Below are positions 9,064 to 57,103 of a stretch of DNA of 64,000 nt, one piece after another. Within the stretch, counting starts at the first letter, position 1; the number at the start of each line of letters is the position of its first letter. Location of the stretch: positions 197,842,001 through 197,906,000 of the forward strand of contig OZ038378.1 in NCBI GenBank assembly GCA_964036045.1. The letters run 5' to 3'. The DNA comes from Eutreptiella sp. 'Long Island Sound 2002' (Eukaryota; Protista; Euglenida). The notes beneath the pieces were generated by a model. The model was not told the DNA's origin. It made no database searches and saw nothing but the letters and a program-made list of their open reading frames with translations. Position numbers and translations under genes: made by a program.

Positions 9064-9348
<285 letters not shown>

Positions 9349-11540: not shown

Positions 11541-12425
<885 letters not shown>

Positions 12426-14023: not shown

Positions 14024-14143
14024 ATTCGTCGCCACGAATGGTTTCAAACCAAACTTCCGGCTTACCTTGCACTGTCCCCTGAAGAACAGCAGCAAGCAGA
14101 GGAAACAGTGAACGGGGAATTATTGCAGTACGTGGCAGCGAAG
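14024..14143 (+). CDS. SNF1: SNF1/AMPK alpha, exon 6 (end of kinase domain, start of UBA-like domain)
   Basis: Acceptor cacag; IRRHEWFQTKLPAYLALSP...VNGELLQYVAAK (40 codons); donor gtgcct at 14144. Confidence 0.9.
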
Positions 14144-17100
14144 GTGCCTCTTGTGCTCCCCCTTTCTTTTTAAGATCGGATCGATACCCGCAGGGCAGGG
14201 GGTCGGGCGGATGGGTGAAAACAGTCCGTGTACCCACAATCGGCCGGGTTCCATCCCCTTCCCACACCCAACCACCATCCGCCCCCGTTGCTCAGCAGTG
14301 GTTTGAGTGCAATGTGTTGAGGAGTGCAAAATTGGACCACAAATTTAAGGAAAAACATGTTGTTCCGAAATTGAAACACAAGAAACTGCTCGTACATAGC
14401 GATAGGAAGGTTTATCAATGCAGATACAAAGGATGTGGAATAGCTTGGTCAATTCTTGTACATGTATATATTTTTGCGTGCGACATTCAGTAGTGCTTGG
14501 GGACTGATGTCTCAATGTCTGTTATAACGCGGTGGCCCTTCCATGTTTGTAATCCGATACCTTCGTTACCACGTGCAAGGATGGTGATTCGTCTGATGTT
14601 GCTGAGCATCCCAGGAGAGACTGAGCCAGATCTGGGGTAAAGAGGAATTCCCAGAGGGTGTCCAAAGGGGTGTGCTTGATATGCAATGCCACCTCTTGCT
14701 GTTCTTGGTGACCTGGTGCTTTTGATGACCCCTAGAGAGAAACTGACATGTTGGACAATGCTGCAACTGTTCTATCTGTATGTGCAAGGAAGGTGATCGA
14801 TCCTTTGTCTGACATCTGATGTCATGTTACTTCTTTGCTGAGCAACCAAGGAGAGACTCCGTTAGATGTTGGTACATGAAAGAGGGGTTCCATTATGGTG
14901 TCCAAATGCAATGCCGCCTGTTGTGAACCGCAGACCATGGGTGGTGGCTGTGCATTATTGATGACCCACAACACTTGCGTTTCTTTTACACGTGGTGTTT
15001 CCTACACATTGATGCTGATTGTGATGTGGCATTTCTTTGCAGGAGTTGAAAAGTTGTTCAGTATTCTACTCTGCTGTATTTGACTTTTTTGCATTCACCA
15101 GCTCATGCTCAGTAGATTGGAGTGTGGTTCACGCTTGATTTGCAGCTGGTTTGCACTCTGCATGGTAGATGAGATATGTTTATGCTGTGTGCTTTGTGGC
15201 CTGGTGCTTTTGATGACCCCTGTAGAGAAACTAACATATTGGGCAATGCTGCAACTGTTCTATCTGTATGTGCAAGGAAGGTGATCGATCCTTTGTCTGA
15301 CATCTGATGTCATGTTACTTCTTTGCTGAGCAACCAAGGAGAGACTCCGTTAGATTTTGGCACATCAAAGAGGAGTTCTCTTATGGTGTCCAAATGCAGT
15401 GCCGCCTCTTATGAATCACAGACCATGGGTGGTGGCTGTGCATTATTGATGACCCACAACACTTGCATTTCTGTTACACGTGGTGTTTCCTACACATTGA
15501 TGCTGATTGTGATGTGGCATTTCTTTGCAGGAGTTGAAAAGTTGTTCAGTATTCTACTCTGCTTTATTTGACTTTTTTGCATTCACCAGCTAAAGATTGG
15601 AGTGTGGTTCACGCTTGATTTGTAGCTGATTTGCGCTCTGCATGGTAGATGAGATATGTTTATGCTGTGTGCTTTGTGGCCTGGTGCTTTTGATGACCAT
15701 TGGAGCGAAACTGACATGTTGGGCAATGCTGCAACTGTTCTATCTGTATGTGCAAGGAAGGTGATCGATCCTTTGTCTGACATCTGATGTCACATCACTA
15801 CTTGCTGAGCAACCAAGGAGAGACTATATTAGATTGTGGCACCTCAAAGGCGGGTTCCATTATGGTGTCCAAATGCAGTGCCGCCTCTCATGAATCACAG
15901 ACCATGGGTGGTGGCTGTGCATTATTGATGACCCACAACACTTGCATTTCTGTTGCACGTGGTGTTTCCTACACATTGATGCTGATTGTGATGTGGCATT
16001 TCTTTGCAAAAGTTGAATGTTTATTGTGTAGTATTTTACTCTGCTGTATTTGACTTTTTTGCATTCACCAGCTCATGCTCAGTAGATTGCAGTGTGGTTC
16101 ACGCTTGATTTGCAGCTGGTTTGCGCTCTGCATGGTAGATGAGATATGTTTATGCTGTGTGCTTTGTGGCCTGGTGCTTTTGATGACCATTGGAGCGAAA
16201 CTGACATGTTGGGCAATGCTGCAACTGTTCTATCTGTATGTGCAAGGAAGGTGATCGATCCTTTGTCTGACATCTGATGTCACATCACTACTTGCTGAGC
16301 AACCAAGGAGAGACTATATTAGATTGTGGCACCTCAAAGGCGGGTTCCATTATGGTGTCCAAATGCAGTGCCGCCTCTCATGAATCACAGACCATGGGTG
16401 GTGGCTGTGCATTATTGATGACCCACAACACTTGCATTTCTGTTGCACGTGGTGTTTCCTACACATTGATGCTGATTGTGATGTGGCATTTCTTTGCAAA
16501 AGTTGAATGTTTATTGTGTAGTATTTTACTCTGCTGTATTTGACTTTTTTGCATTCACCAGCTCATGCTCAGTAGATTGCAGTGTGGTTCACGCTTGATT
16601 TGCAGCTGGTTTGCGCTCTGCATGGTAGATGAGATATGTTTATGCTGTGTGCTTTGTGGCCTGGTGCTTTTGATGACCATTGGAGCGAAACTGACATGTT
16701 GGGCAATGCTGCAACTGTTCTATCTGTATGTGCAAGGAAGGTGATCGATCCTTTGTCTGACATCTGATGTCACATCACTACTTGCTGAGCAACCAAGGAG
16801 AGACTATATTAGATTGTGGCACCTCAAAGGCGGGTTCCATTATGGTGTCCAAATGCAGTGCCGCCTCTCATGAATCACAGACCATGGGTGGTGGCTGTGC
16901 ATTATTGATGACCCACAACACTTGCATTTCTGTTGCACGTGGTGTTTCCTACACATTGATGCTGATTGTGATGTGGCATTTCTTTGCAAAAGTTGAATGT
17001 TTATTGTGTAGTATTTTACTCTGCTGTATTTGACTTTTTTGCATTCACCAGCTCATGCTCAGTAGATTGGAGTGTGGTTCACGCTTGATTTGCAGCTGGT

Positions 17101-20100
17101 TTGCGCTCTGCATGGTAGATGAGATATGTTTATGCTGTGTGCTTTGTGGCCTGGTGCTTTTGATGACCATTGGAGCGAAACTGACATGTTGGGCAATGCT
17201 GCAACTGTTCTATTTGTATGTGCAAGGAAGGTGATCGATCCTTTGTCTGACATCTGATGTCACATCACTACTTGCTGAGCAACCAAGGAGAGACTATATT
17301 AGATTGTGGCACCTCAAAGGCGGGTTCCATTATGGTGTCCAAATGCAGTGCCGCCTCTCATGAATCACAGACCATGGGTGGTGGCTGTGCATTATTGATG
17401 ACCCACAACACTTGCATTTCTGTTGCACGTGGTGTTTCCTACACATTGATGCTGATTGTGATGTGGCATTTCTTTGCAAAAGTTGAATGTTTATTGTGTA
17501 GTATTTTACTCTGCTGTATTTGACTTTTTTGCATTCACCAGCTCATGCTCAGTAGATTGGAGTGTGGTTCACGCTTGATTTGCAGCTGGTTTGCGCTCTG
17601 CATGGTAGATGAGATATGTTTATGCTGTGTGCTTTGTGGCCTGGTGCTTTTGATGACCATTGGAGCGAAACTGACATGTTGGGCAATGCTGCAACTGTTC
17701 TATCTGTATGTGCAAGGAAGGTGATCGATCCTTTGTCTGACATCTGATGTCACATCACTACTTGCTGAGCAACCAAGGAGAGACTATATTAGATTGTGGC
17801 ACCTCAAAGGCGGGTTCCATTATGGTGTCCAAATGCAGTGCCGCCTCTCATGAATCACAGACCATGGGTGGTGGCTGTGCATTATTGATGACCCACAACA
17901 CTTGCATTTCTGTTGCACGTGGTGTTTCCTACACATTGATGCTGATTGTGATGTGGCATTTCTTTGCAAAAGTTGAATGTTTATTGTGTAGTATTTTACT
18001 CTGCTGTATTTGACTTTTTTGCATTCACCAGCTCATGCTCAGTAGATTGGAGTGTGGTTCACGCTTGATTTGCAGCTGGTTTGCGCTCTGCATGGTAGAT
18101 GAGATATGTTTATGCTGTGTGCTTTGTGGCCTGGTGCTTTTGATGACCCCTGGAGAGAAACTGACATGTTGGGCAATGCTGCAACTGTTCTATCTGTATG
18201 TGCAAGGAAGGTGATCGATCCTTTGTCTGACATCTGATGTCACATCACTGCTTGCTGAGCAACCAAGGAAAGACTATATTAGATTTTCGTATATGAAAGA
18301 CGGGTTCCATTGTGGTGTCCAAATGCAGTGCTGCCTCTTATGAATCACAGACCATGGGTGGTGGCTGTGCATTATTGATGACCCACAACACTTGCATTTC
18401 TGTTACACGTGGTGTTTCCTACACATTGATGCTGATTGTGATGTGGCATTTCTTTGCAAAAGTTGAATGTTTATTGTGTAGTATTTTACTCTGCTGTATT
18501 TGACTTTTTTGCATTCACCAGCTCATGCTCAGTAGATTGGAGTGTGGTTCACGCTTGATTTGCAGCTGGTTTGCGCTCTGCATGGTAGATGAGATATGTT
18601 TATGCTGTGTGCTTTGTGGCCTGGTGCTTTTGATGACCATTGGAGCGAAACTGACATGTAGGGCAATGCTGCAACTGTTCTATTTGTATGTGCAAGGAAG
18701 GTGATCGATCCTTTGTCTGACATCTGATGTCACATCACTACTTGCTGAGCAACCAAGGAGAGACTATATTAGATTGTGGCACCTCAAAGGCGGGTTCCAT
18801 TATGGTGTCCAAATGCAGTGCCGCCTCTCATGAATCACAGACCATGGGTGGTGGCTGTGCATTATTGATGACCCACAACACTTGCATTTCTGTTGCACGT
18901 GGTGTTTCCTACACATTGATGCTGATTGTGATGTGGCATTTCTTTGCAAAAGTTGAATGTTTATTGTGTAGTATTTTACTCTGCTGTATTTGACTTTTTT
19001 GCATTCACCAGCTCATGCTCAGTAGATTGGAGTGTGGTTCACGCTTGATTTGCAGCTGGTTTGCGCTCTGCATGGTAGATGAGATATGTTTATGCTGTGT
19101 GCTTTGTGGCCTGGTGCTTTTGATGACCCCTGGAGAGAAACTGACATGTTGGGCAATGCTGCAACTGTTCTATCTGTATGTGCAAGGAAGGTGATCGATC
19201 CTTTGTCTGACATCTGATGTCACATCACTGCTTGCTGAGCAACCAAGGAAAGACTATATTAGATTTTCGTATATGAAAGACGGGTTCCATTGTGGTGTCC
19301 AAATGCAGTGCTGCCTCTTATGAATCACAGACCATGGGTGGTGGCTGTGCATTATTGATGACCCACAACACTTGCATTTCTGTTACACGTGGTGTTTCCT
19401 ACACATTGATGCTGATTGTGATGTGGCATTTCTTTGCAAAAGTTGAATGTTTATTGTGTAGTATTTTACTCTGCTGTATTTGACTTTTTTGCATTCACCA
19501 GCTCATGCTCAGTAGATTGGAGTGTGGTTCACGCTTGATTTGCAGCTGGTTTGCGCTCTGCATGGTAGATGAGATATGTTTATGCTGTGTGCTTTGTGGC
19601 CTGGTGCTTTTGATGACCATTGGAGCGAAACTGACATGTAGGGCAATGCTGCAACTGTTCTATTTGTATGTGCAAGGAAGGTGATCGATCCTTTGTCTGA
19701 CATCTGATGTCACATCACTACTTGCTGAGCAACCAAGGAGAGACTATATTAGATTGTGGCACCTCAAAGGCGGGTTCCATTATGGTGTCCAAATGCAGTG
19801 CCGCCTCTTATGAGTCACAGACCATGGGTGGTGGCTGTGCATTATTGATGACCCACAACACTTGCATTTCTGTTGCACGTGGTGTTTCCTACACATTGAT
19901 GCTGATTGTGATGTGGCATTTCTTTGCAAAAGTTGAATGTTTATTGTGTAGTATTTTACTCTGCTGTATTTGACTTTTTTGCATTCACCAGCTCATGCTC
20001 AGTAGATTGCAGTGTGGTTCACGCTTGATTTGCAGCTGGTTTGCGCTCTGCATGGTAGATGAGATATGTTTATGCTGTGTGCTTTGTGGCCTGGTGCTTT

Positions 20101-23100
20101 TGATGACCATTGGAGCGAAACTGACATGTTGGGCAATGCTGCAACTGTTCTATCTGTATGTGCAAGGAAGGTGATCGATCCTTTGTCTGACATCTGATGT
20201 CACATCACTACTTGCTGAGCAACCAAGGAGAGACTATATTAGATTGTGGCACCTCAAAGGCGGGTTCCATTATGGTGTCCAAATGCAGTGCCGCCTCTCA
20301 TGAATCACAGACCATGGGTGGTGGCTGTGCATTATTGATGACCCACAACACTTGCGTTTCTGTTACACGTGGTGTTTCCTACACATTGATGCTGATTGTG
20401 ATGTGGCATTTCTTTGCAAAAGTTGAATGTTTATTGTGTAGTATTTTACTCTGCTGTATTTGACTTTTTTGCATTCACCAGCTCATGCTCAGTAGATTGG
20501 AGTGTGGTTCACGCTTGATTTGCAGCTGGTTTGCGCTCTGCATGGTAGATGAGATATGTTTATGCTGTGTGCTTTGTGGCCTGGTGCTTTTGATGACCAT
20601 TGGAGCGAAACTGACATGTAGGGCAATGCTGCAACTGTTCTATTTGTATGTGCAAGGAAGGTGATCGATCCTTTGTCTGACATCTGATGTCACATCACTA
20701 CTTGCTGAGCAACCAAGGAGAGACTATATTAGATTGTGGCACCTCAAAGGCGGGTTCCATTATGGTGTCCAAATGCAGTGCCGCCTCTCATGAATCACAG
20801 ACCATGGGTGGTGGCTGTGCATTATTGATGACCCACAACACTTGCATTTCTGTTGCACGTGGTGTTTCCTACACATTGATGCTGATTGTGATGTGGCATT
20901 TCTTTGCAAAAGTTGAATGTTTATTGTGTAGTATTTTACTCTGCTGTATTTGACTTTTTTGCATTCACCAGCTCATGCTCAGTAGATTGCAGTGTGGTTC
21001 ACGCTTGATTTGCAGCTGGTTTGCGCTCTGCATGGTAGATGAGATATGTTTATGCTGTGTGCTTTGTGGCCTGGTGCTTTTGATGACCATTGGAGCGAAA
21101 CTGACATGTTGGGCAATGCTGCAACTGTTCTATCTGTATGTGCAAGGAAGGTGATCGATCCTTTGTCTGACATCTGATGTCACATCACTACTTGCTGAGC
21201 AACCAAGGAGAGACTATATTAGATTGTGGCACCTCAAAGGCGGGTTCCATTATGGTGTCCAAATGCAGTGCCGCCTCTCATGAATCACAGACCATGGGTG
21301 GTGGCTGTGCATTATTGATGACCCACAACACTTGCATTTCTGTTACACGTGGTGTTTCCTACACATTGATGCTGATTGTGATGTGGCATTTCTTTGCAAA
21401 AGTTGAATGTTTATTGTGTAGTATTTTACTCTGCTGTATTTGACTTTTTTGCATTCACCAGCTCATGCTCAGTAGATTGGAGTGTGGTTCACGCTTGATT
21501 TGCAGCTGGTTTGCGCTCTGCATGGTAGATGAGATATGTTTATGCTGTGTGCTTTGTGGCCTGGTGCTTTTGATGACCCCTGGAGAGAAACTGACATGTT
21601 GGGCAATGCTGCAACTGTTCTATCTGTATGTGCAAGGAAGGTGATCGATCCTTTGTCTGACATCTGATGTCACATCACTGCTTGCTGAGCAACCAAGGAA
21701 AGACTATATTAGAAGACGTATATGAAAGAGGAGTTCCATTGTGGTGTCCAAATGCAGTGCTGCCTCTTATGAATCACAGACCATGGGTGGTGGCTGTGCA
21801 TTATTGATGACCCACAACACTTGCATTTCTGTTACACGTGGTGTTTCCTACACATTGATGCTGATTGTGATGTGGCATTTCTTTGCAAAAGTTGAATGTT
21901 TATTGTGTAGTATTTTACTCTGCTGTATTTGACTTTTTTGCATTCACCAGCTCATGCTCAGTAGATTGCAGTGTGGTTCACGCTTGATTTGCAGCTGGTT
22001 TGCGCTCTGCATGGTAGATGAGATATGTTTATGCTGTGTGCTTTGTGGCCTGGTGCTTTTGATGACCATTGGAGCGAAACTGACATGTAGGGCAATGCTG
22101 CAACTGTTCTATCTGTATGTGCAAGGAAGGTGATCGATCCTTTGTCTGACATCTGATGTCACATCACTACTTGCTGAGCAACCAAGGAGAGACTATATTA
22201 GATTGTGGCACCTCAAAGACGGGTTGCATTATGGTGTCCAAATGCAGTGCCGCCTCTTATGAATCACAGACCATGGGTGGTGGCTGTGCATTATTGATGA
22301 CCCACAACACTTGCATTTCTGTTACACGTGGTGTTTCCTACACATTGATGCTGATTGTGATGTGGCATTTCTTTGCAAAAGTTGAATGTTTATTGTGTAG
22401 TATTTTACTCTGCTGTATTTGACTTTTTTGCATTCACCAGCTCATGCTCAGTAGATTGGAGTGTGGTTCACGCTTGATTTGCAGCTGGTTTGCGCTCTGC
22501 ATGGTAGATGAGATATGTTTATGCTGTGTGCTTTGTGGCCTGGTGCTTTTGATGACCCCTGGAGAGAAACTGACATGTTGGGCAATGCTGCAACTGTTCT
22601 ATCTGTATGTGCAAGGAAGGTGATCGATCCTTTGTCTGACATCTGATGTCACATCACTGCTTGCTGAGCAACCAAGGAAAGACTATATTAGAAGACGTAT
22701 ATGAAAGAGGAGTTCTATTATGGTGTCCAAATGCAGTGCTGCCTCTTATGAATCACAGACCATGGGTGGTGGCTGTGCATTATTGATGACCCACAACACT
22801 TGCATTTCTGTTACACGTGGTGTTTCCTACACATTGATGCTGATTGTGATGTGGCATTTCTTTGCAAAAGTTGAATGTTTATTGTGTAGTATTGTACTCT
22901 GCTGTATTTGACTTTTTTGCATTCACCAGCTCATGCTCAGTAGATTGGAGTGTGGTTCACGCTTGATTTGCAGCTGGTTTGCGCTCTGCATGGTAGATGA
23001 GATATGTTTATGCTGTGTGCTTTGTGGCCTGGTGCTTTTGATGACCATTGGAGCGAAACTGACATGTAGGGAATGCTGCAACTGTTCTATCTGTATGTGC

Positions 23101-39160: not shown

Positions 39161-40067
39161 TCTCTCGGGGACATCCGGTTTCATGCCAACACGGAGCGTT
39201 TTCAGGGGTTGGTGCCTTTGTGGCCTCATTTGTGCCCGCTGAGTGTCCGGTTTGGGGGGGTATGTGGGTCATATTCGGAAAGCCCTTGAAAAGGGCTATT
39301 CGGAACACCCCAGGTTTGCATGCTGTGCTAACGACATGTTTGAGATTTTTGTCCGCTTTGGACGGTGCCTGTGTTGCCCGCTGCCTATTTTTGTTAACAG
39401 GCAGCCACCATGTCGTCATACAAATTCACACAACGTGCTGTGTTGATTCGGGACCACAAAATCAAGTGGTTGGATTTTGGCACCACCCCTGATGAGGGCA
39501 GCCTTTCCCATCACCCTGGTTTTACCTGGATGAAAGCAGGGTACAGCGAGTCCATTGAGTGGCGCAAGGTGAGGCTGACCAAGCAACGGAATGTTGACCT
39601 CACAACAGATGGTCTCTGGGCAATGCCTCTGAATTCAGGGTGGGTACCGGTAAAGAGCCGCAGGTTGCAGGATTGGCAAAAGCTGAAAAAATATGTTCCT
39701 AACAATAAGCATGGTGATGTCTGCCCAAATGGGGTCCCAGCCCTGCCTGAAAAAGACAGCGCAAATGACGATTCGGAATAAGCAAGTGTGAAACATTCAG
39801 TGCATGTTTGCGTGCCGACTTTGCAGCAACCTGGGGTCGAAAATCGTGCAAACAACGAAAAGTTTGGCCTCGATGCTCAAAAATATCGTCAGCTACCCCC
39901 CCCTAACCCATGCATTTCTGAAATGGCCTTTTCTCACAGATTTCAAAAAGTACACACATACGCCCCCCTACGGAATGAAATTTTGGTGCTCTGGACGAAA
40001 AATGGTGAAAACCCTGAAAATACACGAATTTGCTCCGCGTTGGCATATTATGAATGTCCCCGAGAGA
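39161..40067 (+). mobile_element. Non-autonomous TIR DNA transposon (907 bp) inserted into one array unit; Sola1-like or Tc1/mariner-like
   Basis: Perfect 14-bp TIR tctctcggggacat (39161-39174) / atgtccccgagaga (40054-40067). The empty site gatgagatatgctg is seen in sister units, so the TSD is TA, or ATAT with the element at 39162-40066. Internal ORF remnant 39410-39781 (IKWLDF...WRKV...PVKSRRLQDWQKLKKYVP) looks like a transposase C-terminus. Confidence 0.9.
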
Positions 40068-43000
40068 TATGCTGTGTGCTTTGTGGCCTGGTGCTTTTGA
40101 TGACCATTGGAGCGAAACTGACATGTAGGGCAATGCTGCAACTGTTCTATCTGTATGTGCAAGGAAGGTGATCGATCCTTTGTCTGACATCTGATGTCAC
40201 ATCACTACTTGCTGAGCAACCAAGGAGAGACTATATTAGATTGTGGCACATCAAAGAGGAGTTCTATTATGGTGTCCAAATGCAGTGCCGCCTCTTATGA
40301 ATCACAGACCATGGGTGGTGGCTGTGCATTATTGATGACCCACAACACTTGCATTTCTGTTACACGTGGTGTTTCCTACACATTGATGCTGATTGTGATG
40401 TGGCATTTCTTTGCAAAAGTTGAATGTTTATTGTGTAGTATTTTACTCTGCTGTATTTGACTTTTTTGCATTCACCAGCTCATGCTCAGTAGATTGGAGT
40501 GTGGTTCACGCTTGATTTGCAGCTGGTTTGCGCTCTGCATGGTAGATGAGATATGTTTATGCTGTGTGCTTTGTGGCCTGGTGCTTTTGATGACCATTGG
40601 AGCGAAACTGACATGTAGGGCAATGCTGCAACTGTTCTATCTGTATGTGCAAGGAAGGTGATCGATCCTTTGTCTGACATCTGATGTCACATCACTACTT
40701 GCTGAGCAACCAAGGAAAGACTATATTAGATTTTGGTACATCAAAGAGGGGTTCCATTATGGTGTCCAAATGCAGTGCCGCCTCTTATGAATCACAGACC
40801 ATGGGTGGTGGCTGTGCATTATTGATGACCCACAACACTTGCATTTCTGTTACACGTGGTGTTTCCTACACATTGATGCTGATTGTGATGTGGCATTTCT
40901 TTGCAAAAGTTGAATGTTTATTGTGTAGTATTTTGCTCTGCTGTATTTGACTTTTTTGCATTCACCAGCTCATGCTCAGTAGATTGGAGTGTGGTTCACG
41001 CTTGATTTGCAGCTGGTTTGCGCTCTGCATGGTAGATGAGATATGTTTATGCTGTGTGCTTTGTGGCCTGGTGCTTTTGATGACCATTGGAGCGAAACTG
41101 ACATGTAGGGCAATGCTGCAACTGTTCTATCTGTATGTGCAAGGAAGGTGATCGATCCTTTGTCTGACATCTGATGTCACATCACTACTTGCTGAGCAAC
41201 CAAGGAGAGACTCCGTTAGATTTTGGTGTATGAAAGACGGGTTCCATTATGGTGTCCAAATGCAGTGCCGCCTCTTATGAATCACAGACCATGGGTGGTG
41301 GCTGTGCATTATTGATGACCCACAACACTTGCATTTCTGTTACACGTGGTGTTTCCTACACATTGATGCTGATTGTGATGTGGCATTTCTTTGCAAAAGT
41401 TGAACGTTTATTGTGTAGTATTTTACTCTGCTTTATTTGACTTTTTTGCATTCACCAGCTCATGCTCAGTAGATTGGAGTGTGGTTCACGCTTGATTTGC
41501 AGCTGGTTTGCGCTCTGCATGGTAGATGAGATATGTTTATGCTGTGTGCTTTGTGGCCTGGTGCTTTTGATGACCATTGGAGCGAAACTGACATGTAGGG
41601 CAATGCTGCAACTGTTCTATCTGTATGTGCAAGGAAGGTGATCGATCCTTTGTCTGACATCTGATGTCACATCACTGCTTGCTGAGCAACCAAGGAGAGA
41701 CCCCGTTAGATTGTGGCACATCAAAGAGGGGTTCTATTATGGTGTCCAAATGCAGTGCCGCCTCTTATGAATCACAGACCATGGGTGGTGGCTGTGCATT
41801 ATTGATGACCCACAACACTTGCATTTCTGTTACACGTGGTGTTTCCTACACATTGATGCTGATTGTGATGTGGCATTTCTTTGCAAAAGTTGAATGTTTA
41901 TTGTGTAGTATTTTACTCTGCTGTATTTGACTTTTTTGCATTCACCAGCTCATGCTCAGTAGATTGGAGTGTGGTTCACGCTTGATTTGCAGCTGGTTTG
42001 CGCTCTGCATGGCAGATGATTTATGCTGTGTGCTTTGTGGCCTGGTGCTTTTGATGACCATTGGAGCGAAACTGACATGTAGGGCAATGCTGCAACTGTT
42101 CTATCTGTATGTGCAAGGAAGGTGATCGATCCTTTGTCTGACATCTGATGTCACATCACTACTTGCTGAGCAACCAAGGAGAGACTATATTAGATTGTGG
42201 CACATCAAAGAGGAGTTCTATTATGGTGTCCAAATGCAGTGCCGCCTCTTATGAATCACAGACCATGGGTGGTGGCTGTGCATTATTGATGACCCACAAC
42301 ACTTGCATTTCTGTTACACGTGGTGTTTCCTACACATTGATGCTGATTGTGATGTGGCATTTCTTTGCAAAAGTTGAATGTTTATTGTGTAGTATTTTAC
42401 TCTGCTGTATTTGACTTTTTTGCATTCACCAGCTCATGCTCAGTAGATTGGAGTGTGGTTCACGCTTGATTTGCAGCTGGTTTGCACTCTGCATGGTAGA
42501 TGAGATATGTTTATGCTGTGTGCTTTGTGGCCTGGTGCTTTTGATGACCATTGGAGCGAAACTGACATGTAGGGCAATGCTGCAACTGTTCTATCTGTAT
42601 GTGCAAGGAAGGTGATCGATCCTTTGTCTGACATCTGATGTCACATCACTACTTGCTGAGCAACCAAGGAAAGACTATATTAGATTTTGGTATATGAAAG
42701 ATGGGTTCCATTATGGTGTCCAAATGCAGTGCCGCCTCTTATGAATCACAGACCATGGGTGGTGGCTGTGCATTATTGATGACCCACAACACTTGCATTT
42801 CTGTTACACGTGGTGTTTCCTACACATTGATGCTGATTGTGATGTGGCATTTCTTTGCAAAAGTTGAATGTTTATTGTGTAGTATTTTACTCTGCTGTAT
42901 TTGACTTTTTTGCATTCACCAGCCCATGCTCAGTAGATTGGAGTGTGGTTCACACTTGATTTGCAGCTGGTTTGCGCTCTGCATGGTAGATGAGATATGT

Positions 43001-46000
43001 TTATGCTGTGTGCTTTGTGGCCTGGTGCTTTTGATGACCATTGGAGCGAAACTGACATGTAGGGCAATGCTGCAACTGTTCTATCTGTATGTGCAAGGAA
43101 GGTGATCGATCCTTTGTCTGACATCTGATGTCACATCACTACTTGCTGAGCAACCAAGGAGAGACTCCGTTAGATTTTGGTGTATGAAAGACGGGTTCCA
43201 TTATGGTGTCCAAATGCAGTGCCGCCTCTTATGAATCACAGACCATGGGTGGTGGCTGTGCATTATTGATGACCCACAACACTTGCATTTCTGTTACACG
43301 TGGTGTTTCCTACACATTGATGCTGATTGTGATGTGGCATTTCTTTGCAAAAGTTGAACGTTTATTGTGTAGTATTCTACTCTGCTTTATTTGACTTTTT
43401 TGCATTCACCAGCTCATGCTCAGTAGATTGGAGTGTGGTTCACGCTTGATTTGCAGCTGGTTTGCGCTCTGCATGGTAGATGAGATATGTTTATGCTGTG
43501 TGCTTTGTGGCCTGGTGCTTTTGATGACCATTGGAGCGAAACTGACATGTAGGGCAATGCTGCAACTGTTCTATCTGTATGTGCAAGGAAGGTGATCGAT
43601 CCTTTGTCTGACATCTGATGTCACATCACTACTTGCTGAGCAACCAAGGAGAGACTGTGTTAGATTTTGGTATATGAAAGACGGGTTCCATTGTGGTGTC
43701 CAAATGCAGTGCCGCCTCTTATGAATCACAGACCATGGGTGGTGGCTGTGCATTATTGATGACCCACAACACTTGCATTTCTGTTACACGTGGTGTTTCC
43801 TACACATTGATGCTGATTGTGATGTGGCATTTCTTTGCAAAAGTTGAATGTTTATTGTGTAGTATTTTACTCTGCTGTATTTGACTTTTTTGCATTCACC
43901 AGCTCATGCTCAGTAGATTGGAGTGTGGTTCACGCTTGATTTGCAGCTGGTTTGCGCTCTGCATGGTAGATGAGATATGTTTATGCTGTGTGCTTTGTGG
44001 CCTGGTGCTTTTGATGACCATTGGAGCGAAACTGACATGTAGGGCAATGCTGCAACTGTTCTATCTGTATGTGCAAGGAAGGTGATCGATCCTTTGTCTG
44101 ACATCTGATGTCACATCACTACTTGCTGAGCAACCAAGGAGAGACTGTGTTAGATTTTGGTATATGAAAGACGGGTTCCATTGTGGTGTCCAAATGCAGT
44201 GCCGCCTCTTATGAATCACAGACCATGGGTGGTGGCTGTGCATTATTGATGACCCACAACACTTGCATTTCTGTTACACGTGGTGTTTCCTACACATTGA
44301 TGCTGATTGTGATGTGGCATTTCTTTGCAAAAGTTGAATGTTTATTGTGTAGTATTTTACTCTGCTGTATTTGACTTTTTTGCATTCACCAGCTCATGCT
44401 CAGTAGATTGGAGTGTGGTTCACGCTTGATTTGCAGCTGGTTTGCGCTCTGCATGGTAGATGAGATATGCTGTGTGCTTTGTGGCCTGGTGCTTTTGATG
44501 ACCATTGGAGCGAAACTGACATGTAGGGCAATGCTGCAACTGTTCTATCTGTATGTGCAAGGAAGGTGATCGATCCTTTGTCTGACATCTGATGTCACAT
44601 CACTGCTTGCTGAGCAACCAAGGAGAGACTCCGTTAGATTTTGGCACATGAAAGACGGGTTCCATTATGGTGTCCAAATGCAGTGCCGCCTCTTATGAAT
44701 CACAGACCATGGGTGGTGGCTGTGCATTATTGATGACCCACAACACTTGCATTTCTGTTACACGTGGTGTTTCCTACACATTGATGCTGATTGTGATGTG
44801 GCATTTCTTTGCAAAAGTTGAACGTTTATTGTGTAGTATTTTACTCTGCTTTAGTTGACTTTTTTGCATTCACCAGCTCATGCTCAGTAGATTGCAGTGT
44901 GGTTCACGCTTGATTTGCAGCTGGTTTGCGCTCTGCATGGTAGATGAGATATGTTTATGCTGTGTGCTTTGTGGCCTGGTGCTTTTGATGACCCCTGGAG
45001 CGAAACTGACATGTAGGGCAATGCTGCAACTGTTCTATCTGTATGTGCAAGGAAGGTGATCGATCCTTTGTCTGACATCTGATGTCACATCACTGCTTGC
45101 TGAGCAACCAAGGAGAGACCCCGTTAGATTTTGGCACATCAAAGAGGAGTTCTATTATGGTGTCCAAATGCAGTGCCGCCTCTTATGAATCACAGACCAT
45201 GGGTGGTGGCTGTGCATTATTGATGACCCACAACACTTGCATTTCTGTTACACGTGGTGTTTCCTACACATTGATGCTGATTGTGATGTGGCATTTCTTT
45301 GCAAAAGTTGAACGTTTATTGTGTAGTATTTTACTCTGCTTTATTTGACTTTTTTGCATTCACCAGCTCATGCTCAGTAGATTGCAGTGTGGTTCACGCT
45401 TGATTTGCAGCTGGTTTGCGCTCTGCATGGTAGATGAGATATGTTTATGCTGTGTGCTTTGTGGCCTGGTGCTTTTGATGACCATTGGAGCGAAACTGAC
45501 ATGTAGGGCAATGCTGCAACTGTTCTATCTGTATGTGCAAGGAAGGTGATCGATCCTTTGTCTGACATCTGATGTCACATCACTGCTTGCTGAGCAACCA
45601 AGGAGAGACTCCGTTAGATTTTGGCACATCAAAGAGGAGTTCTATTATGGTGTCCAAATGCACTGCCGCCTCTTATGAGTCACAGACCATGGGTGGTGGC
45701 TGTGCATTATTGATGACCCACAACACTTGCATTTCTGTTACACGTGGTGTTTCCTACACATTGATGCTGATTGTGATGTGGCATTTCTTTGCAAAAGTTG
45801 AACGTTTATTGTGTAGTATTTTACTCTGCTTTATTTGACTTTTTTGCATTCACCAGCTCATGCTCAGTAGATTGCAGTGTGGTTCACGCTTGATTTGCAG
45901 CTGGTTTGCGCTCTGCATGGTAGATGAGATATGCTGTGTGCTTTGTGGCCTGGTGCTTTTGATGACCATTGGAGCGAAACTGACATGTAGGGCAATGCTG

Positions 46001-49000
46001 CAACTGTTCTATCTGTATGTGCAAGGAAGGTGATCGATCCTTTGTCTGACATCTGATGTCACATCACTGCTTGCTGAGCAACCAAGGAGAGACTCCGTTA
46101 GATTTTGGCACATCAAAGAGGAGTTCTATTATGGTGTCCAAATGCAGTGCCGCCTCTTATGAATCACAGACCATGGGTGGTGGCTGTGCATTATTGATGA
46201 CCCACAACACTTGCATTTCTGTTACACGTGGTGTTTCCTACACATTGATGCTGATTGTGATGTGGCATTTCTTTGCAAAAGTTGAATGTTTATTGTGTAG
46301 TATTTTACTCTGCTTTATTTGAATTTTTTGCATTCACCAGCTCATGCTCAGTAGATTGGAGTGTGGTTCACGCTTGATTTGCAGCTGGTTTGCGCTCTGC
46401 ATGGTAGATGAGATATGTTTATGCTGTGTGCTTTGTGGCCTGGTGCTTTTGATGACCCCTGGAGCGAAACTGACATGTAGGGCAATGCTGCAACTGTTCT
46501 ATCTGTATGTGCAAGGAAGGTGATCGATCCTTTGTCTGACATCTGATGTCACATCACTGCTTGCTGAGCAACCAAGGAGAGACTCCGTTAGATTTTGGCA
46601 CATCAAAGAGGAGTTCTATTATGGTGTCCAAATGCAGTGCCGCCTCTTATGAATCACAGACCATGGGTGGTGGCTGTGCATTATTGATGACCCACAACAC
46701 TTGCATTTCTGTTACACGTGGTGTTTCCTACACATTGATGCTGATTGTGATGTGGCATTTCTTTGCAAAAGTTGAATGTTTATTGTGTAGTATTTTACTC
46801 TGCTTTATTTGAATTTTTTGCATTCACCAGCTCATGCTCAGTAGATTGGAGTGTGGTTCACGCTTGATTTGCAGCTGGTTTGCGCTCTGCATGGTAGATG
46901 AGATATGTTTATGCTGTGTGCTTTGTGGCCTGGTGCTTTTGATGACCCCTGGAGCGAAACTGACATGTAGGGCAATGCTGCAACTGTTCTATCTGTATGT
47001 GCAAGGAAGGTGATCGATCCTTTGTCTGACATCTGATGTCACATCACTGCTTGCTGAGCAACCAAGGAGAGACTCCGTTAGATTTTGGCACATCAAAGAG
47101 GAGTTCCATTATGGTGTCCAAATGCAGTGCCGCCTCTTATGAATCACAGACCATGGGTGGTGGCTGTGCATTATTGATGACCCACAACACTTGCATTTCT
47201 GTTACACGTGGTGTTTCCTACACATTGATGCTGATTGTGATGTGGCATTTCTTTGCAAAAGTTGAACGTTTATTGTGTAGTATTTTACTCTGCTTTATTT
47301 GACTTTTTTGCATTCACCAGCTCATGCTCAGTAGATTGGAGTGTGGTTCACGCTTGATTTGCAGCTGGTTTGCGCTCTGCATGGTAGATGAGATATGTTT
47401 ATGCTGTGTGCTTTGTGGCCTGGTGCTTTTGATGACCCCTGGAGCGAAACTGACATGTAGGGCAATGCTGCAACTGTTCTATCTGTATGTGCAAGGAAGG
47501 TGATCGATCCTTTGTCTGACATCTGATGTCACATCACTACTTGCTGAGCAACCAAGGAGAGACTCCGTTAGATTTTGGTATATGAAAGACGGGTTCCATT
47601 GTGGTGTCCAAATGCAGTGCCGCCTCTTGTGAATCGCAGACCATGGGTGGTGGCTGTGCATTATTGATGACCCACAACACTTGCATTTCTGTTACACGTG
47701 GTGTTTCCTACACATTGATGCTGATTGTGATGTGGCATTTCTTTGCAAAAGTTGAATGTTTATTGTGTAGTATTTTACTCTGCTGTATTTGACTTTTTTG
47801 CATTCACCAGCTCATGCTCAGTAGATTGGAGTGTGGTTCACACTTGATTTGCAGCTGGTTTGCGCTCTGCATGGTAGATGAGATATGCTGTGTGCTTTGT
47901 GGCCTGGTGCTTTTGATGACCATTGGAGCGAAACTGACATGTAGGGCAATGCTGCAACTGTTCTATCTGTATGTGCAAGGAAGGTGATCGATCCTTTGTC
48001 TGACATCTGATGTCACATCACTGCTTGCTGAGCAACCAAGGAGAGACTCCGTTAGATTTTGGCACATCAAAGAGGAGTTCCATTATGGTGTCCAAATGCA
48101 GTGCCGCCTCTTATGAATCACAGACCATGGGTGGTGGCTGTGCATTATTGATGACCCACAACACTTGCATTTCTGTTGCACGTGGTGTTTCCTACACATT
48201 GATGCTGATTGTGATGTGGCATTTCTTTGCAAAAGTTGAATGTTTATTGTGTAGTATTTTACTCTGCTGTATTTGACTTTTTTGCATTCACCAGCTCATG
48301 CTCAGTAGATTGGAGTGTGGTTCACGCTTGATTTGCAGCTGGTTTGCGCTCTGCATGGTAGATGAGATATGCTGTGTGCTTTGTGGCCTGGTGCTTTTGA
48401 TGACCATTGGAGCGAAACTGACATGTTGGGCAATGCTGCAACTGTTCTATCTGTATGTGCAAGGAAGGTGATCGATCCTTTGTCTGACATCTGATGTCAC
48501 ATCACTGCTTGCTGAGCAACCAAGGAGAGACTCCGTTAGATTTTGGCACATCAAAGAGGGGTTCCATTATGGTGTCCAAATGCAGTGCCGCCTCTTATGA
48601 ATCACAGACCATGGGTGGTGGCTGTGCATTATTGATGACCCACAACACTTGCATTTCTGTTACACGTGGTGTTTCCTACACATTGATGCTGATTGTGATG
48701 TGGCATTTCTTTGCAAAAGTTGAATGTTTATTGTGTAGTATTTTACTCTGCTTTATTTGACTTTTTTGCATTCACCAGCTCATGCTCAGTAGATTGGAGT
48801 GTGGTTCACGCTTGATTTGCAGCTGGTTTGCACTCTGCATGGTAGATGAGATATGTTTATGCTGTGTGCTTTGTGGCCTGGTGCTTTTGATGACCATTGG
48901 AGCGAAACTGACATGTAGGGCAATGCTGCAACTGTTCTATCTGTATGTGCAAGGAAGGTGATCGATCCTTTGTCTGACATCTGATGTCACATCACTGCTT

Positions 49001-49860
49001 GCTGAGCAACCAAGGAGAGACTCCGTTAGATTTTGGTATATGAAAGATGGGTTCCATTATGGTGTCCAAATGCAGTGCCGCATCTTGTGAATCGCAGACC
49101 ATGGGTGGTGGCTGTGCATTATTGATGACCCACAACACTTGCATTTCTGTTACACGTGGTGTTTCCTACACATTGATGCTGATTGTGATGTGGCATTTCT
49201 TTGCAAAAGTTGAATGTTTATTGTGTAGTATTTTACTCTGCTGTATTTGACTTTTTTGCATTCACCAGCTCATGCTCAGTAGATTGGAGTGTGGTTCACG
49301 CTTGATTTGCAGCTGGTTTGCGCTCTGCATGGTAGATGAGATATGCTGTGTGCTTTGTGGCCTGGTGCTTTTGATGACCATTGGAGCGAAACTGACATGT
49401 TGGGCAATGCTGCAACTGTTCTATCTGTATGTGCAAGGAAGGTGATCGATCCTTTGTCTGACATCTGATGTCACATCACTGCTTGCTGAGCAACCAAGGA
49501 GAGACTCCGTTAGATTTTGGTATATGAAAGATGGGTTCCATTATGGTGTCCAAATGCAGTGCCGCCTCTTGTGAATCGCAGACCATGGGTGGTGGCTGTG
49601 CATTATTGATGACCCACAACACTTGCATTTCTGTTACACGTGGTGTTTCCTACACATTGATGCTGATTGTGATGTGGCATTTCTTTGCAAAAGTTGAATG
49701 TTTATTGTGTAGTATTTTACTCTGCTGTATTTGACTTTTTTGCATTCACCAGCTCATGCTCAGTAGATTGGAGTGTGGTTCACACTTGATTTGCAGCTGG
49801 TTTGCGCTCTGCATGGTAGATTAGATATGCTGTGTGCTTTGTGGCCTGGTGCTTTTGATG

Positions 49861-50053
49861 CCCCCTTAGCATGTGCGTGGTGCACCACTCCTTGGTGCCA
49901 ATGGGGAATTGAAGGGTGTTGGCGGTGTGGAAATGACCTACAATTACTCCCATTCATCACTATTCATCACCACAAGTGTGCCCAAGGCAACACACGGCAG
50001 TCAAAAAAAAAAAGAAGGAGGGAACTTGAAAAGGTTAGAATAAAAAATTGGTG
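49861..50053. mobile_element. ~193-bp foreign insertion in one array unit
   Basis: The unit sequence ttttgatg|accattgg is split by cccccttagc...aaaaaattggtg. A 2-bp TG duplication is possible; the 3' half is A-rich; there are no TIRs. Confidence 0.75.
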
Positions 50054-53000
50054 ACCATTGGAGCGAAACTGACATGTAGGGCAATGCTGCAACTGTTCTA
50101 TCTGTATGTGCAAGGAAGGTGATCGATCCTTTGTCTGACATCTGATGTCACATCACTGCTTGCTGAGCAACCAAGGAGAGACTCCGTTAGATTTTGGCAC
50201 ATCAAAGAGGAGTTCTATTATGGTGTCCAAATGCAGTGCCGCCTCTTATGAATCACAGACCATGGGTGGTGGCTGTGCATTATTGATGACCCACAACACT
50301 TGCATTTCTGTTACACGTGGTGTTTCCTACACATTGATGCTGATTGTGATGTGGCATTTCTTTGCAAAAGTTGAATGTTTATTGTGTAGTATTTTACTCT
50401 GCTGTATTTGACTTTTTTGCATTCACCAGCTCATGCTCAGTAGATTGGAGTGTGGTTCACGCTTGATTTGCAGCTGGTTTGCGCTCTGCATGGTAGATGA
50501 GATATGTTTATGCTGTGTGCTTTGTGGCCTGGTGCTTTTGATGACCATTGGAGCGAAACTGACATGTAGGGCAATGCTGCAACTGTTCTATCTGTATGTG
50601 CAAGGAAGGTGATCGATCCTTTGTCTGACATCTGATGTCACATCACTGCTTGCTGAGCAACCAAGGAGAGACTCCGTTAGATTTTGGCACATCAAAGAGG
50701 GGTTCCATTATGGTGTCCAAATGCAGTGCCGCCTCTTATGAATCACAGACCATGGGTGGTGGCTGTGCATTATTGATGACCCACAACACTTGCATTTCTG
50801 TTACACGTGGTGTTTCCTACACATTGATGCTGATTGTGATGTGGCATTTCTTTGCAAAAGTTGAATGTTTATTGTGTAGTATTTTACTCTGCTTTATTTG
50901 ACTTTTTTGCATTCACCAGCCCATGCTCAGTAGATTGCAGTGTGGTTCACGCTTGATTTGCAGCTGGTTTGCGCTCTGCATGGTAGATGAGATATGTTTA
51001 TGCTGTGTGCTTTGTGGCCTGGTGCTTTTGATGACCATTGGAGCGAAACTGACATGTAGGGCAATGCTGCAACTGTTCTATCTGTATGTGCAAGGAAGGT
51101 GATCGATCCTTTGTCTGACATCTGATGTCACATCACTGCTTGCTGAGCAACCAAGGAGAGACTCCGTTAGATTTTGGCACATCAAAGAGGGGTTCCATTA
51201 TGGTGTCCAAATGCAGTGCCGCCTCTTATGAATCACAGACCATGGGTGGTGGCTGTGCATTATTGATGACCCACAACACTTGCATTTCTGTTACACGTGG
51301 TGTTTCCTACACATTGATGCTGATTGTGATGTGGCATTTCTTTGCAAAAGTTGAATGTTTATTGTGTAGTATTTTACTCTGCTTTATTTGACTTTTTTGC
51401 ATTCACCAGCCCATGCTCAGTAGATTGCAGTGTGGTTCACGCTTGATTTGCAGCTGGTTTGCGCTCTGCATGGTAGATGAGATATGTTTATGCTGTGTGC
51501 TTTGTGGCCTGGTGCTTTTGATGACCCCTGGAGCGAAACTGACATGTAGGGCAATGCTGCAACTGTTCTATCTGTATGTGCAAGGAAGGTGATCGATCCT
51601 TTGTCTGACATCTGATGTCACATCACTGCTTGCTGAGCAACCAAGGAGAGACCCCGTTAGATTGTGGCACATCAAAGTGGGGTTCCATTATGGTGTCCAA
51701 ATGCAGTGCCGCCTCTTATGAATCACAGACCATGGGTGGTGGCTGTGCATTATTGATGACCCACAACACTTGCATTTCTGTTACACGTGGTGTTTCCTAC
51801 ACATTGATGCTAATTGTGATGTGGCATTTCTTTGCAAAAGTTGAATGTTTATTGTGTAGTATTTTACTCTGCTGTATTTGACTTTTTTGCATTCACCAGC
51901 TCATGCTCAGTAGATTGGAGTGTGGTTCACGCTTGATTTGCAGCTGGTTTGCGCTCTGCATGGTAGATGAGATATGTTTATGCTGTGTGCTTTGTGGCCT
52001 GGTGCTTTTGATGAGCCCTCAAGCGAAACTGACATGTAGGGCAATGCTGCAACTGTTCTATCTGTATGTGCAAGGAAGGTGATCGATCCTTTGTCTGACA
52101 TCTGATGTCACATCACTGCTTGCTGAGCAACCAAGGAAAGACTACATTAGATTTTCGTATATGAAAGATGGGTTCCATTATGGTGTCCAAATGCAGTGCC
52201 GCATCTTGTGAATCGCAGACCATGGGTGGTGGCTGTGCATTATTGATGACCCACAACACTTGCATTTCTGTTACACGTGGTGTTTCCTACACATTGATGC
52301 TGATTGTGATGTGGCATTTCTTTGCAAAAGTTGAATGTTTATTGTGTAGTATTTTACTCTGCTTTATTTGACTTTTTTGCATTCACCAGCTCATGCTCAG
52401 TAGATTGGAGTGTGGTTCACGCTTGATTTGCAGCTGGTTTGCGCTCTGCATGGTAGATGAGATATGTTTATGCTGTGTGCTTTGTGGCCTGGTGCTTTTG
52501 ATGACCATTGGAGCGAAACTGACATGTAGGGCAATGCTGCAACTGTTCTATCTGTATGTGCAAGGAAGGTGATCGATCCTTTGTCTGACATCTGATGTCA
52601 CATCACTGCTTGCTGAGCAACCAAGGAGAGACTCCGTTAGATTGTGGCACATCAGAGAGGGGTTCCATTATGGTGTCCAAATGCAGTGCCGCCTCTTATG
52701 AATCACAGACCATGGGTGGTGGCTGTGCATTATTGATGACCCACAACACTTGCATTTCTGTTACACGTGGTGTTTCCTACACATTGATGCTGATTGTGAT
52801 GTGGCATTTCTTTGCAAAAGTTGAATGTTTATTGTGTAGTATTTTACTCTGCTGTATTTGACTTTTTTGCATTCACCAGCTCATGCTCAGTAGATTGGAG
52901 TGTGGTTCACGCTTGATTTGCAGCTGATTTGCGCTCTGCATGGTAGATGAGATATGCTGTGTGCTTTGTGGCCTGGTGCTTTTGATGACCATTGGAGCGA

Positions 53001-55437
53001 AACTGACATGTAGGGCAATGCTGCAACTGTTCTATCTGTATGTGCAAGGAAGGTGATCGATCCTTTGTCTGACATCTGATGTCACATCACTGCTTGCTGA
53101 GCACCCAAGGAGAGACTATATTAGATTGTGGCACATCAAAGAGGAGTTCTATTATGGTGTCCAAATGCAGTGCCGCCTCTTATGAACCGCAGACCATGGG
53201 TGGTGGCTGTGCATTATTGATGACCCACAACACTTGCATTTCTGTTACACGTGGTGTTTCCTACACATTGATGCTGATTGTGATGTGGCATTTCTTTGCA
53301 AAAGTTGAATGTTTATTTTGTAGTATTTTACTCTGCTGTATTTGACTTTTTTGCATTCACCAGCTCATGCTCAGTAGATTGGAGTGTGGTTCACGCTTGA
53401 TTTGCAGCTGGTTTGCGCTCTGCATGGCAGATGATTTATGCTGTGTGCTTTGTGGCCTGGTGCTTTTGATGACCATTGGAGCGAAACTGACATGTAGGGC
53501 AATGCTGCAACTGTTCTATCTGTATGTGCAAGGAAGGTGATCGATCCTTTGTCTGACATCTGATGTCACATCACTGCTTGCTGAGCAACCAAGGAGAGAT
53601 TTTGTTAGATTGTGGCACATCAAAGAGGGGTTCCATTATGGTGTCCAAATGCAGTGCCGCCTCTTATGAATCACAGACCATGGGTGGTGGCTGTGCATTA
53701 TTGATGACCCACAACACTTGCGTTTTTTTTACAGGTGGTGTTTCCTACACATTGATGCTGATTGTGATGTGGCATTTCTTTGCAAAAGTTGAATGTTTAT
53801 TGTGTAGTATTTTACTCTGCTTTATTTGACTTTTTTGCATTCACCAGCTAATGCTCAGTAGATTGGAGTGTGGTTCACGCTTGATTTGCAGCTGGTTTGC
53901 GCTCTGCATGGTAGATGAGATATGTTTCAGCCCTCTACTTATCTTTTTCTGCGTGTCACACTTTTTCTTTTCTTTTCTTTCTTTTCTTTTCATTTGGCGT
54001 TTTTTTTCGGATCGGGGGGATGTTGCTCAACCTCTTGCAGACGAGGGGTTTTTTTTTGGTGGATGTTGCGGCCTACGCCAAATCAAGACTGAGCATTGGC
54101 TCCAATCCGGTTGGCAACATTATGCACAATAGTCACAGCAGCTCGATAAAGATCTTTGTCAAAGGACCCATCAGGGCCCAAGATGTTTCTAGAAAACCCC
54201 GCTACGAGATTCTCCAAATGAACCTCCAAACGAAGCGTCAAGGACCACCCAGAAAGGACCGCGATGATGGAATCACTTTGAAGGGTCTTGCAAAGGACCT
54301 CAAATGGAGCCCTGTAAAGGACACCCTTGAGGGACACCCTGAAGGGGGGGGTCAGTGGGGGTCACATGCTCATTCAAAGTGCCACCTTGCAAAGGCCTGC
54401 TGCTGGGCAGCAAATAGGGGTCACAGATGGTCCTGAGTACCTGGAGTGTAGGGGGTGTCTCATTTTTGCATTAATATGTGTTCAAATTTGATTTTCCTTT
54501 CATTGACTGAGTTTTCAGGGCCTGTAGTGTTGAGCGACGGACCCGAAGGGGACGCAGTCTGGGTTTTCCTATGCGGAAAATCAGTAGATGTTTTTCGCAT
54601 TGCTTATGTGTGCTATGAAGCTGACCTTTCATGCTTGCTGAATGGGCTCTTTCATGTTGAAATACAGCTGGTTCGTTTGTGACATATCATTCAGATTAAT
54701 GTTCGTTTTGTGTTTGGGCTAGCCTGAGTTACACGCACCCACCCGCCCGCCCACCGGACTGTCCCTTTGGCATGCAATGGCTGTTCATCACATCCTCATG
54801 CTTTCAGGCAGTCTGGATGTTGCTATGCAGAGGACCAGTAGATGCTTTTTGCTCTGCGTGTGCTATGAAACACAAAAGGACAGCTGCCACTGCAGTTACC
54901 CATGGGGGGTTTGCCAGGGTTTATGGTCACTGCTCAAATGAACCCCCCCCCCCCTTGTCTTGAAGGCAATTGACAGTCTGACCAACCTTAGCAACACAAA
55001 TTCCGCAAAATCCAGTGTACCACTGATGTGTAATTTGTGGTGGTCTGGAAAGGGCAGTGTGTTACAACTCCCACATTGGTGGCGGAGAGCACCCTCCAGA
55101 CTGGGAGGGCATGCATGAGAAGCAGGCCAGCCTGTTGAGGAAGTGGCAACAGGGGCAGAAGTCGAGAGCAGTGGGACAAACATTTCATTCTTGCCACCCC
55201 CCACCCCCCAAACCATCAACCAGTTTCCTTGGCACCATGCAAAACTTTTAAGTGACCCGGTCCCATGAGTGCCGGGTGGACGCACTGTGCAACATCAGAA
55301 CTGTTCTGGAAGCTCTGTCTGCTTCCCTTACTGCTGCTGAACACTGCTCAACACTATTGTCATACATTCAGAAACGTTCAGTTCAGTTTGCTACCACTGA
55401 ACTGCATGTGACATGCAACTTCACTCTCTTGCAACAG

Positions 55438-57040: not shown

Positions 57041-57103
57041 CAGCAGCAAGCAGCAAGCAACAGTGGCAATAGCAACAACAGCAGCAAGCAGCAGCAACAA
57101 GCA
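57041..57103. repeat. Imperfect CAG/CAA/CAAG microsatellite
   Basis: cagcagcaagcagcaagcaacag...gcagcaacaagc. Confidence 0.7.

Follow-up and report, generated by a model that had tools for sequence, protein, structure and literature searches.

The 64,000-nucleotide stretch considered here (positions 197,842,001 to 197,906,000 of contig OZ038378.1 in the Eutreptiella sp. 'Long Island Sound 2002' assembly GCA_964036045.1; hereafter the window, numbered from its first letter) carries on its forward strand exons 1 to 8 of a gene encoding the alpha subunit of the energy-sensing protein kinase SNF1/AMPK. The sixth intron of this gene measures 41,294 bp and is occupied almost entirely by a tandem satellite with a 490-bp unit. 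By linking the gene model, public RNA and DNA data and the corresponding intron of a related euglenid, we conclude that intron 6 is probably an ancestral intron swollen by a satellite and spliced exactly, whose repeat has no function of its own.

The SNF1/AMPK alpha gene

Exons were located from open reading frames (ORFs) and by tblastn with two euglenid orthologues, P0002 (602 amino acids, from the Euglena longa transcriptome GGOE01) and P0006 (617 amino acids, from a 2.7-kb JGI contig). Intron models had to have GT..AG boundaries and keep the frame open, and among these the one matching P0002 best was taken. The resulting gene structure is given below with its evidence, in which X2 denotes metatranscriptome contigs described in the following section.

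8634-8711, + strand: exon 1, coding from the likely ATG (MSHKGK...GQTLGQ); tblastn with P0002 and P0006, donor CAA-GTATGT, ORF
9139-9345, + strand: exon 2, kinase N-lobe, 94-96% identity to the orthologues; tblastn, gene model
10077-10173, + strand: exon 3; tblastn, gene model
11593-11848, + strand: exon 4, catalytic loop and activation loop; ORF, tblastn, gene model
12191-12341, + strand: exon 5, kinase C-lobe; tblastn, gene model
14024-14143, + strand: exon 6 (IRRHEWF...VNGELLQYVAAK), in which the kinase domain ends and the UBA-like segment begins; tblastn, gene model, X2 record 12
14144-55437, + strand: intron 6, 41,294 bp, GT..AG, phase 0; sequence, RNA junction, orthologous intron of 653 bp
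55438-55584, + strand: exon 7 (MDIPFDLAMRSMRSGQKTDLSVAYYILLHYKNQ...), remainder of the UBA-like segment; tblastn, gene model, X2 records 12 and 13
55585-56354, + strand: intron 7, 770 bp, GT..AG; X2 RNA joint, gene model
56355-56498, + strand: exon 8 (...LQPSPVMSALL...GLARQ); X2 record 14, tblastn
56499-64000, + strand: start of intron 8, transposon-rich, at least 9.7 kb; loose contig end behind 56499

Introns 1 to 7 are 427, 731, 1,419, 342, 1,682, 41,294 and 770 bp long, so that the six mapped beside intron 6 span 342-1,682 bp, in keeping with the 0.3-1.7 kb given by the original prediction, a reading of the letters that preceded this analysis. Exon 9 (AYNQPTGST...) was found neither in the window nor beyond it to window position 66216, and the gene has at least two inflated introns, 6 and 8.

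Assignment to the kinase family is based on several lines of evidence. Exons 1-6 are 62-96% identical to the euglenid orthologues, which score the Pkinase model at 1e-80 and whose best named matches are AMPK alpha and SnRK1 KIN10; exon 4 contains the catalytic-loop and activation-loop motifs, with the T172 equivalent, of a CAMKL/AMPK-type kinase. By homology and position only, a UBA-like or autoinhibitory segment appears to follow the kinase domain: residues 255-338 of P0002 align with plant SnRK1 (42% identity over 84 residues, E 1e-17) across the Pfam UBA domain of the latter at 293-329. Since the Pfam UBA model itself gives no score on the euglenid proteins, the label 'UBA-like' is a fair one. 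The orthologues also carry the motif ...IQLYRMADQHDRGYLVDL..., read as typical of the alpha C-terminal domain, and the Pfam AdenylateSensor and KA1 models gave no score on P0002. Searches for a transcript-derived full-length protein of this species itself, by representative and by homologue, returned only the orthologues of the two other euglenids.

Removal of intron 6 from RNA

Public sequencing runs were mapped onto positions 53450-59400 (5,951 letters): X1, an RNA library; X2, an estuary metatranscriptome in the form of contigs; and X4 and X7, two DNA runs, X7 being of low coverage. Exon 6 ends ...GCGAAG-GTGCCT at 14143/14144 and exon 7 begins ...CAACAG-ATGGAC at 55437/55438. Record 12 of X2 (194 nt) lies without mismatch on 55436-55486 and has 143 extra letters in front, the last 30 of which match 14112-14141 uniquely and with 0 mismatches. 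Because exon 6 and the intron both end in AG, this record reads exon 6 (to 14143) straight into exon 7 (from 55438), the very joint of 14143 to 55438 foreseen from the genomic letters. The same metatranscriptome joins 55584 to 56355 across a GT..AG intron, and this joint is absent from X4 and X7; as far as these two DNA runs show, the spliced form is therefore not a DNA retrocopy.

Intron 6 thus has the properties of a conventional GT..AG intron, namely the boundaries AAG-GTGCCT...CAACAG-ATG, a frame that is kept, and removal in RNA. The intron is removed precisely, and mRNA and protein are unchanged; in P0002 and P0006 the protein is likewise continuous at the junction (...VA(A/T)K-MDIPF...).

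The same intron in a related euglenid

A 960-bp genomic contig from the species of P0006 (L001; JGI 3300050355), reached through the 89-amino-acid gene-caller product P0003, contains exon 6 at 41-161 (ending ...GTCGCCACAAAG, followed by GTCCGG), a 653-bp GT..AG intron, and exon 7 from 815 (CTCCAG-ATGGAC). This intron has the same position and phase as intron 6. When the contig is aligned with the window, only the exons match, and no similarity to the satellite is found. The shared position and phase, together with the short and repeat-free intron of the relative, indicate that the intron is ancestral and that its 41-kb size is a lineage-specific gain. The earlier proposal of a 41,294-bp intron splitting the UBA-like domain was right in its coordinates and peptide ends, and is borne out by the RNA junction, the continuous orthologues and the relative's short intron. 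The end of exon 7 seems to come earlier in the relative, after ...YYILLHN, than the 55584 of this species, so that the downstream intron may be placed differently in the two euglenids.

Anatomy of the satellite array

Intron 6 is composed of the following parts.

14144-14699, + strand: left unique part; sequence
14700-53927, + strand: 490-bp satellite array of 78 units; repeat finding, anchor count, unit alignment, depth in DNA run X4
39162-40068, strand not assigned: transposon-like insertion of 907 bp in unit 50, whose terminal inverted repeats are 13 bp long (CTCTCGGGGACAT / ATGTCCCCGAGAG)
49862-50048, + strand: retroposon-like insert in unit 70, about 181-187 bp long and A-rich in its tail, flanked by TTGATG/TTGGTG and lying inside a TGATGA motif
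53928-55437, + strand: right unique tail, ending with the acceptor CTCTCTTGCAACAG

Tandem Repeats Finder reports a period-490 repeat in three blocks (14700-39161, 40068-49860 and 50048-53927) of 50, 20.1 and 7.9 copies, with 97% matches. The count of an invariant 20-mer used as an anchor is exactly 78; its commonest spacing is 490, the exact value of 54 of the 77 spacings, in agreement with the homogeneous array of about 39 kb and about 78 units described at the outset. When the units are aligned, interior ones are 96-99% identical to the consensus and the two leftmost 90-92%. The array is accordingly a satellite in the ordinary sense: long, head-to-tail and non-coding, with high unit identity and diverged edges; the ORFs within a unit are all short (88 amino acids at most). 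Unit haplotypes are numerous and spatially clustered, in that units 3-7 resemble one another, two types are interleaved across units 8-32, and another type makes up the 3' third. Such clustering, along with the diverged edge units and the interleaved zone, is what would be expected of a satellite that grew locally and has been truly resolved by the assembly.

Variation between units is spread unevenly: it is almost absent at consensus positions 71-140 and 246-350 (pi about 0.001-0.005 and 0-0.014, respectively), whereas 141-245 are variable, with pi of 0.07-0.16 at 141-210. The sense strand is T- and G-rich (GC skew +0.14, AT skew -0.22), and G+C content is 0.44 compared to about 0.5 in the flanks. 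The observed/expected CpG ratio is 0.31 versus 0.34-0.92 in the other introns of the gene, a value which, being one 490-bp composition sampled 78 times, amounts to a single observation. No progenitor of the unit was detected by similarity elsewhere in the 64-kb window or in the relative's intron, and an invariant 22-mer of the unit had zero exact matches in JGI metagenome contigs.

A splice-site score matrix built from the seven introns of the gene, which is descriptive only, finds three donor-like sites per unit. One of these, AAG-GTGATC, shares its GTGATC core with the donor of intron 3, and its extended form AAGGTGATCG is present in 75 units. By the same matrix, no acceptor-like site in the unit is as good as the weakest real acceptor; if the matrix holds, cryptic exons cannot form within the array, which may explain why the array is tolerated.

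The two breaks in the array are insertions and not different repeats. Since each lies in a single unit, both are later than the spread of those units. The 907-bp element has a probable 4-bp ATAT target duplication and is single-copy within the window, and its 123-amino-acid ORF (39410-39778) has no Pfam match. The insert in unit 70 is 77% similar, in reverse orientation, to 57490-57545 in intron 8; X1 RNA contigs of up to 1,328 nt overlap the latter segment, and the family may be expressed. In the left flank, 14520-14699 resembles a degenerate partial unit by eye, of which blastn confirms only a 24-nt match at 14599-14622. ORFs in the intron flanks have no Pfam match. Within the single-copy right tail, a 190-nt X1 RNA contig (depth 4) matches 54008-54197 perfectly, and X1 has no depth on exons 7 and 8. 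This segment has no Rfam match and no excess of structure, and a minus-strand ORF overlapping it has no Pfam match; the RNA may represent a stable fragment of the intron or a transcript of its own.

Copy number and confinement to the locus

X4 contigs match the window letter for letter along 3.2 and 2.3 kb. Unit depth in X4 is 952-1129 against a single-copy depth of 13.7, which gives 70-82 copies where 78 are assembled; the close agreement implies that the repeat is essentially confined to intron 6. In X7, from organism B and identical to the window in its unique regions, the ratio of unit to single-copy depth is about 10-25, compared to about 80 in X4. This could reflect a copy-number difference between isolates; alternatively, it may be a depth artefact, as the other high-copy repeat is reduced about 2.4-fold as well.

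The window contains no N. Through the unit ORFs we found a 441,182-bp contig, ctg9616_43x_l of ENA ERZ25074135, in which the intron flanks are spaced exactly as in the window; 38.7 kb of it are letter-identical to the window, and it represents the same assembly. A gap-free single contig of 441 kb rules out a scaffold join, without independently proving the length of the array.

Transcription of the satellite

The array is transcribed. A contig covering a whole unit is present in both RNA libraries, at a depth of 19.5 in X1 and 16-23 in X2. Carry-over of DNA was controlled with a very high-copy repeat at 57032-57230 in intron 8: the ratio of its depth to that of the satellite is 14-16 in the DNA run X4 and 23 in X7 (low coverage), compared to 3.1 in the RNA library X1 and 1.4-2.0 in the RNA library X2. 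As RNA made from the control repeat can only raise this ratio, no more than roughly a tenth to a quarter of the signal from the satellite can come from carry-over DNA. Per copy, satellite depth in X2 is about 0.2-0.3 against 3.3-3.8 for the exon contigs, that is, 6-9%, which is within the range expected of pre-mRNA or excised intron.

The control repeat itself reaches a depth of 15,690 in X4 compared to the single-copy 13.7, corresponding to about 1,100 copies; it varies by indels at 57086, and contigs join it in many alternative ways.

Is the unit a small-RNA gene?

Tandem clusters of small nucleolar RNA (snoRNA) genes are known in Euglena, and the satellite could in principle be a series of such genes (box C/D or otherwise snoRNA-like) released from the excised intron or the pre-mRNA. 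The unit is present as RNA, its sense strand has two perfect TGATGA and five CTGA motifs where the antisense strand has none and one, respectively, a 60-nt TGATGA...CTGA candidate lies at consensus 270-329, and the candidate regions belong to the stretches of the unit that vary least. However, among shuffles that preserve dinucleotides, 17% have at least as many TGATGA motifs as the unit, 28% have at least as many CTGA motifs, and 10% contain a correctly spaced pair. By inspection, the flanks that would form terminal stems pair poorly. On both strands, every 120-nt window folds no better than shuffled sequence (z >= -1), and the putative D' guide is not constant between copies, with variation at positions 43, 44 and 50. 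At gathering score Rfam gave zero matches to the unit; the best E was 0.58, and bit scores were 12-18 where the cut-offs are 43-52.

Complementarity to ribosomal RNA (rRNA) was assessed against conserved k-mers from 120 eukaryotic ribosomal DNA contigs sharing a universal small-subunit motif. The unit had 1 match at 10 nt, versus a shuffle mean of 2.0, and none at 11-13 nt, and the sole 10-nt match does not adjoin a box. A G.U-tolerant test of the segments upstream of each CTGA was within its null, which is too permissive to discriminate. Per-copy RNA at only about 6-9% of the exon level also speaks against small-RNA genes, bearing in mind that standard libraries capture small RNAs poorly. Two hallmarks of a box C/D gene array, boxes with a terminal stem above chance and a match to a curated snoRNA family, are thus lacking, and the motif scan, shuffles, folding, Rfam and rRNA complementarity gave the snoRNA-array reading no support; we consider it unlikely.

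Interpretation

An ancestral, phase 0 GT..AG intron in the UBA-like segment would have been inflated about 63-fold, from roughly 0.65 to 41.3 kb. Growth would have proceeded by amplification in place of a locus-specific 490-bp satellite, through local duplication or unequal exchange, and the two transposons would have been inserted once the array had grown. The array is presumably transcribed as part of the pre-mRNA, with the repeat as a passenger that lacks a function of its own. Its main effects would be about 41 kb of extra transcription per mRNA and a tolerated burden of decoy donor-like sites. At typical polymerase II speeds, 41 kb corresponds to minutes to tens of minutes.

Several points weigh against the view of a swollen but functionless ancestral intron. 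The junction is carried by one low-depth contig (depth 3.3) from one metatranscriptome. The satellite contigs show neither strand, RNA ends nor local depth, and may stem from an independent or antisense satellite transcript or from processed small RNAs. The uneven variation among units could mean constraint instead of history. Array length is supported independently of the assembly by depth only, the 441-kb contig being the same assembly. All 11 weak Rfam matches (E 0.6-9) are to snoRNA families on the + strand, and the rRNA test used the conserved rRNA of other eukaryotes, so that lineage-specific targets may escape it.

If the array were not a passenger, its units might be processed into a lineage-specific non-coding RNA, or its length might set the timing or level of AMPK alpha and vary between strains. 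Taken together, these options are distinctly improbable in our judgement; were the 78 sense-strand units indeed processed from the excised intron into non-coding RNA, small or long, the energy-sensor gene would at the same time host an RNA factory.

Another proposal, which takes up suggestions of the original prediction, is that the array has been co-opted as a regulator, whether as a delay timer or brake on AMPK alpha, as a copy-number tuner, or as a heterochromatin- or centromere-like domain. The extra 41 kb through which a stress-response kinase gene must be transcribed, the low CpG ratio and the possible copy-number difference suggested by the lower X7 ratio are all compatible with such a role. 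However, the lower X7 ratio is common to another high-copy repeat and may be a depth artefact, and the CpG value counts once. Moreover, the relative manages with a 653-bp intron, the array tolerates two transposon insertions, and 39 kb at one locus would make a very small centromere. We regard co-option as very unlikely.

That the length or continuity of the array is an artefact of assembly, with two arrays joined or one repeat over-expanded, is extremely improbable. In its favour, 39 kb of units that are 97-99% identical to their consensus are hard to assemble, and the one further record of the locus comes from this same assembly. Against it, the X4 copy estimate agrees with the assembled number, a single contig of 441 kb, free of gaps and labelled 43x, contains the locus, reads are anchored by the many position-specific variants and by the two unique insertions, and both array edges abut unique sequence by exons 6 and 7, which RNA joins, so that a satellite-bearing intron exists whatever its exact length.

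Neighbouring features of the window

Two further ORFs lie upstream of the kinase gene.

26-3016, + strand: ORF of 996 amino acids, Ty3/gypsy chromovirus pol with reverse transcriptase, RNase H, integrase and a C-terminal chromodomain (Pfam)
7083-7940, + strand: ORF of 285 amino acids with no Pfam match

The pol ORF runs off the start of the window and is about 5.6 kb upstream of the kinase gene. The second ORF contains, at 7624-7727, a 12-nt CACCACCACAAG-like codon repeat encoding a Gln/Ala/Pro-rich run, and may belong to a transposon gag-like gene beside the gypsy pol.

Comparison with known systems and significance

Gigantic introns filled with satellite are known from the Y-linked fertility genes kl-3 and kl-5 of Drosophila (Fingerhut et al. 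2019, PMC6508621; PMC11207136). As in these genes, the euglenid intron consists almost wholly of tandem satellite, is transcribed, and is removed to give a normal mRNA. The Drosophila introns are, however, of megabase size and made of simple 5-10-bp units, whereas the present one is 41.3 kb with a complex 490-bp unit; it therefore shares with Drosophila-type gigantism a satellite-filled, transcribed intron and falls short of its megabase scale. The Drosophila genes furthermore encode testis-specific dyneins and employ dedicated factors, whereas the gene described here encodes a ubiquitous energy-sensor kinase and is not known to be sex-linked, to be heterochromatic or to have a dedicated expression programme or factors.

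Euglena gracilis and trypanosomatids reportedly have tandemly repeated snoRNA gene clusters (Russell, Moore and Gray laboratories). The satellite resembles these in being a head-to-tail repeat of a few hundred bp in a euglenid, with C/D-like motifs and presence as RNA, and differs from them in having box motifs at chance frequency, no Rfam match, no terminal stems, a guide that varies between copies and, in the test run here, no complementarity to conserved rRNA. In animals and plants, tandem arrays of the minisatellite, macrosatellite and satellite kinds arise and expand within introns; they are co-transcribed, and usually neutral and polymorphic in copy number. Compared to those arrays, the present case is a 63-fold inflation of an intron over its orthologue in a related species, in a protist, by a satellite apparently confined to that one intron. 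A limited literature search found no published description of satellite-filled introns in euglenids.

Taken alone, the finding changes nothing known about AMPK or about satellites. It provides a clean, RNA-verified case, outside animals, of a housekeeping or stress-signalling gene with a satellite-filled giant intron. With the relative's 653-bp intron as the 'before' state, the expansion is datable to one lineage and traceable to one repeat. Cas9 editing of Euglena has been reported (PMC13142649); should this species prove culturable and editable, a direct test of what such an intron costs or brings may be feasible. This genome also uses nonconventional introns (PMC12501133), and the finding bears on the recognition of conventional ones: the euglenid splicing machinery can bring together a donor and an acceptor separated by 41 kb in which a donor-like motif recurs 75 times.

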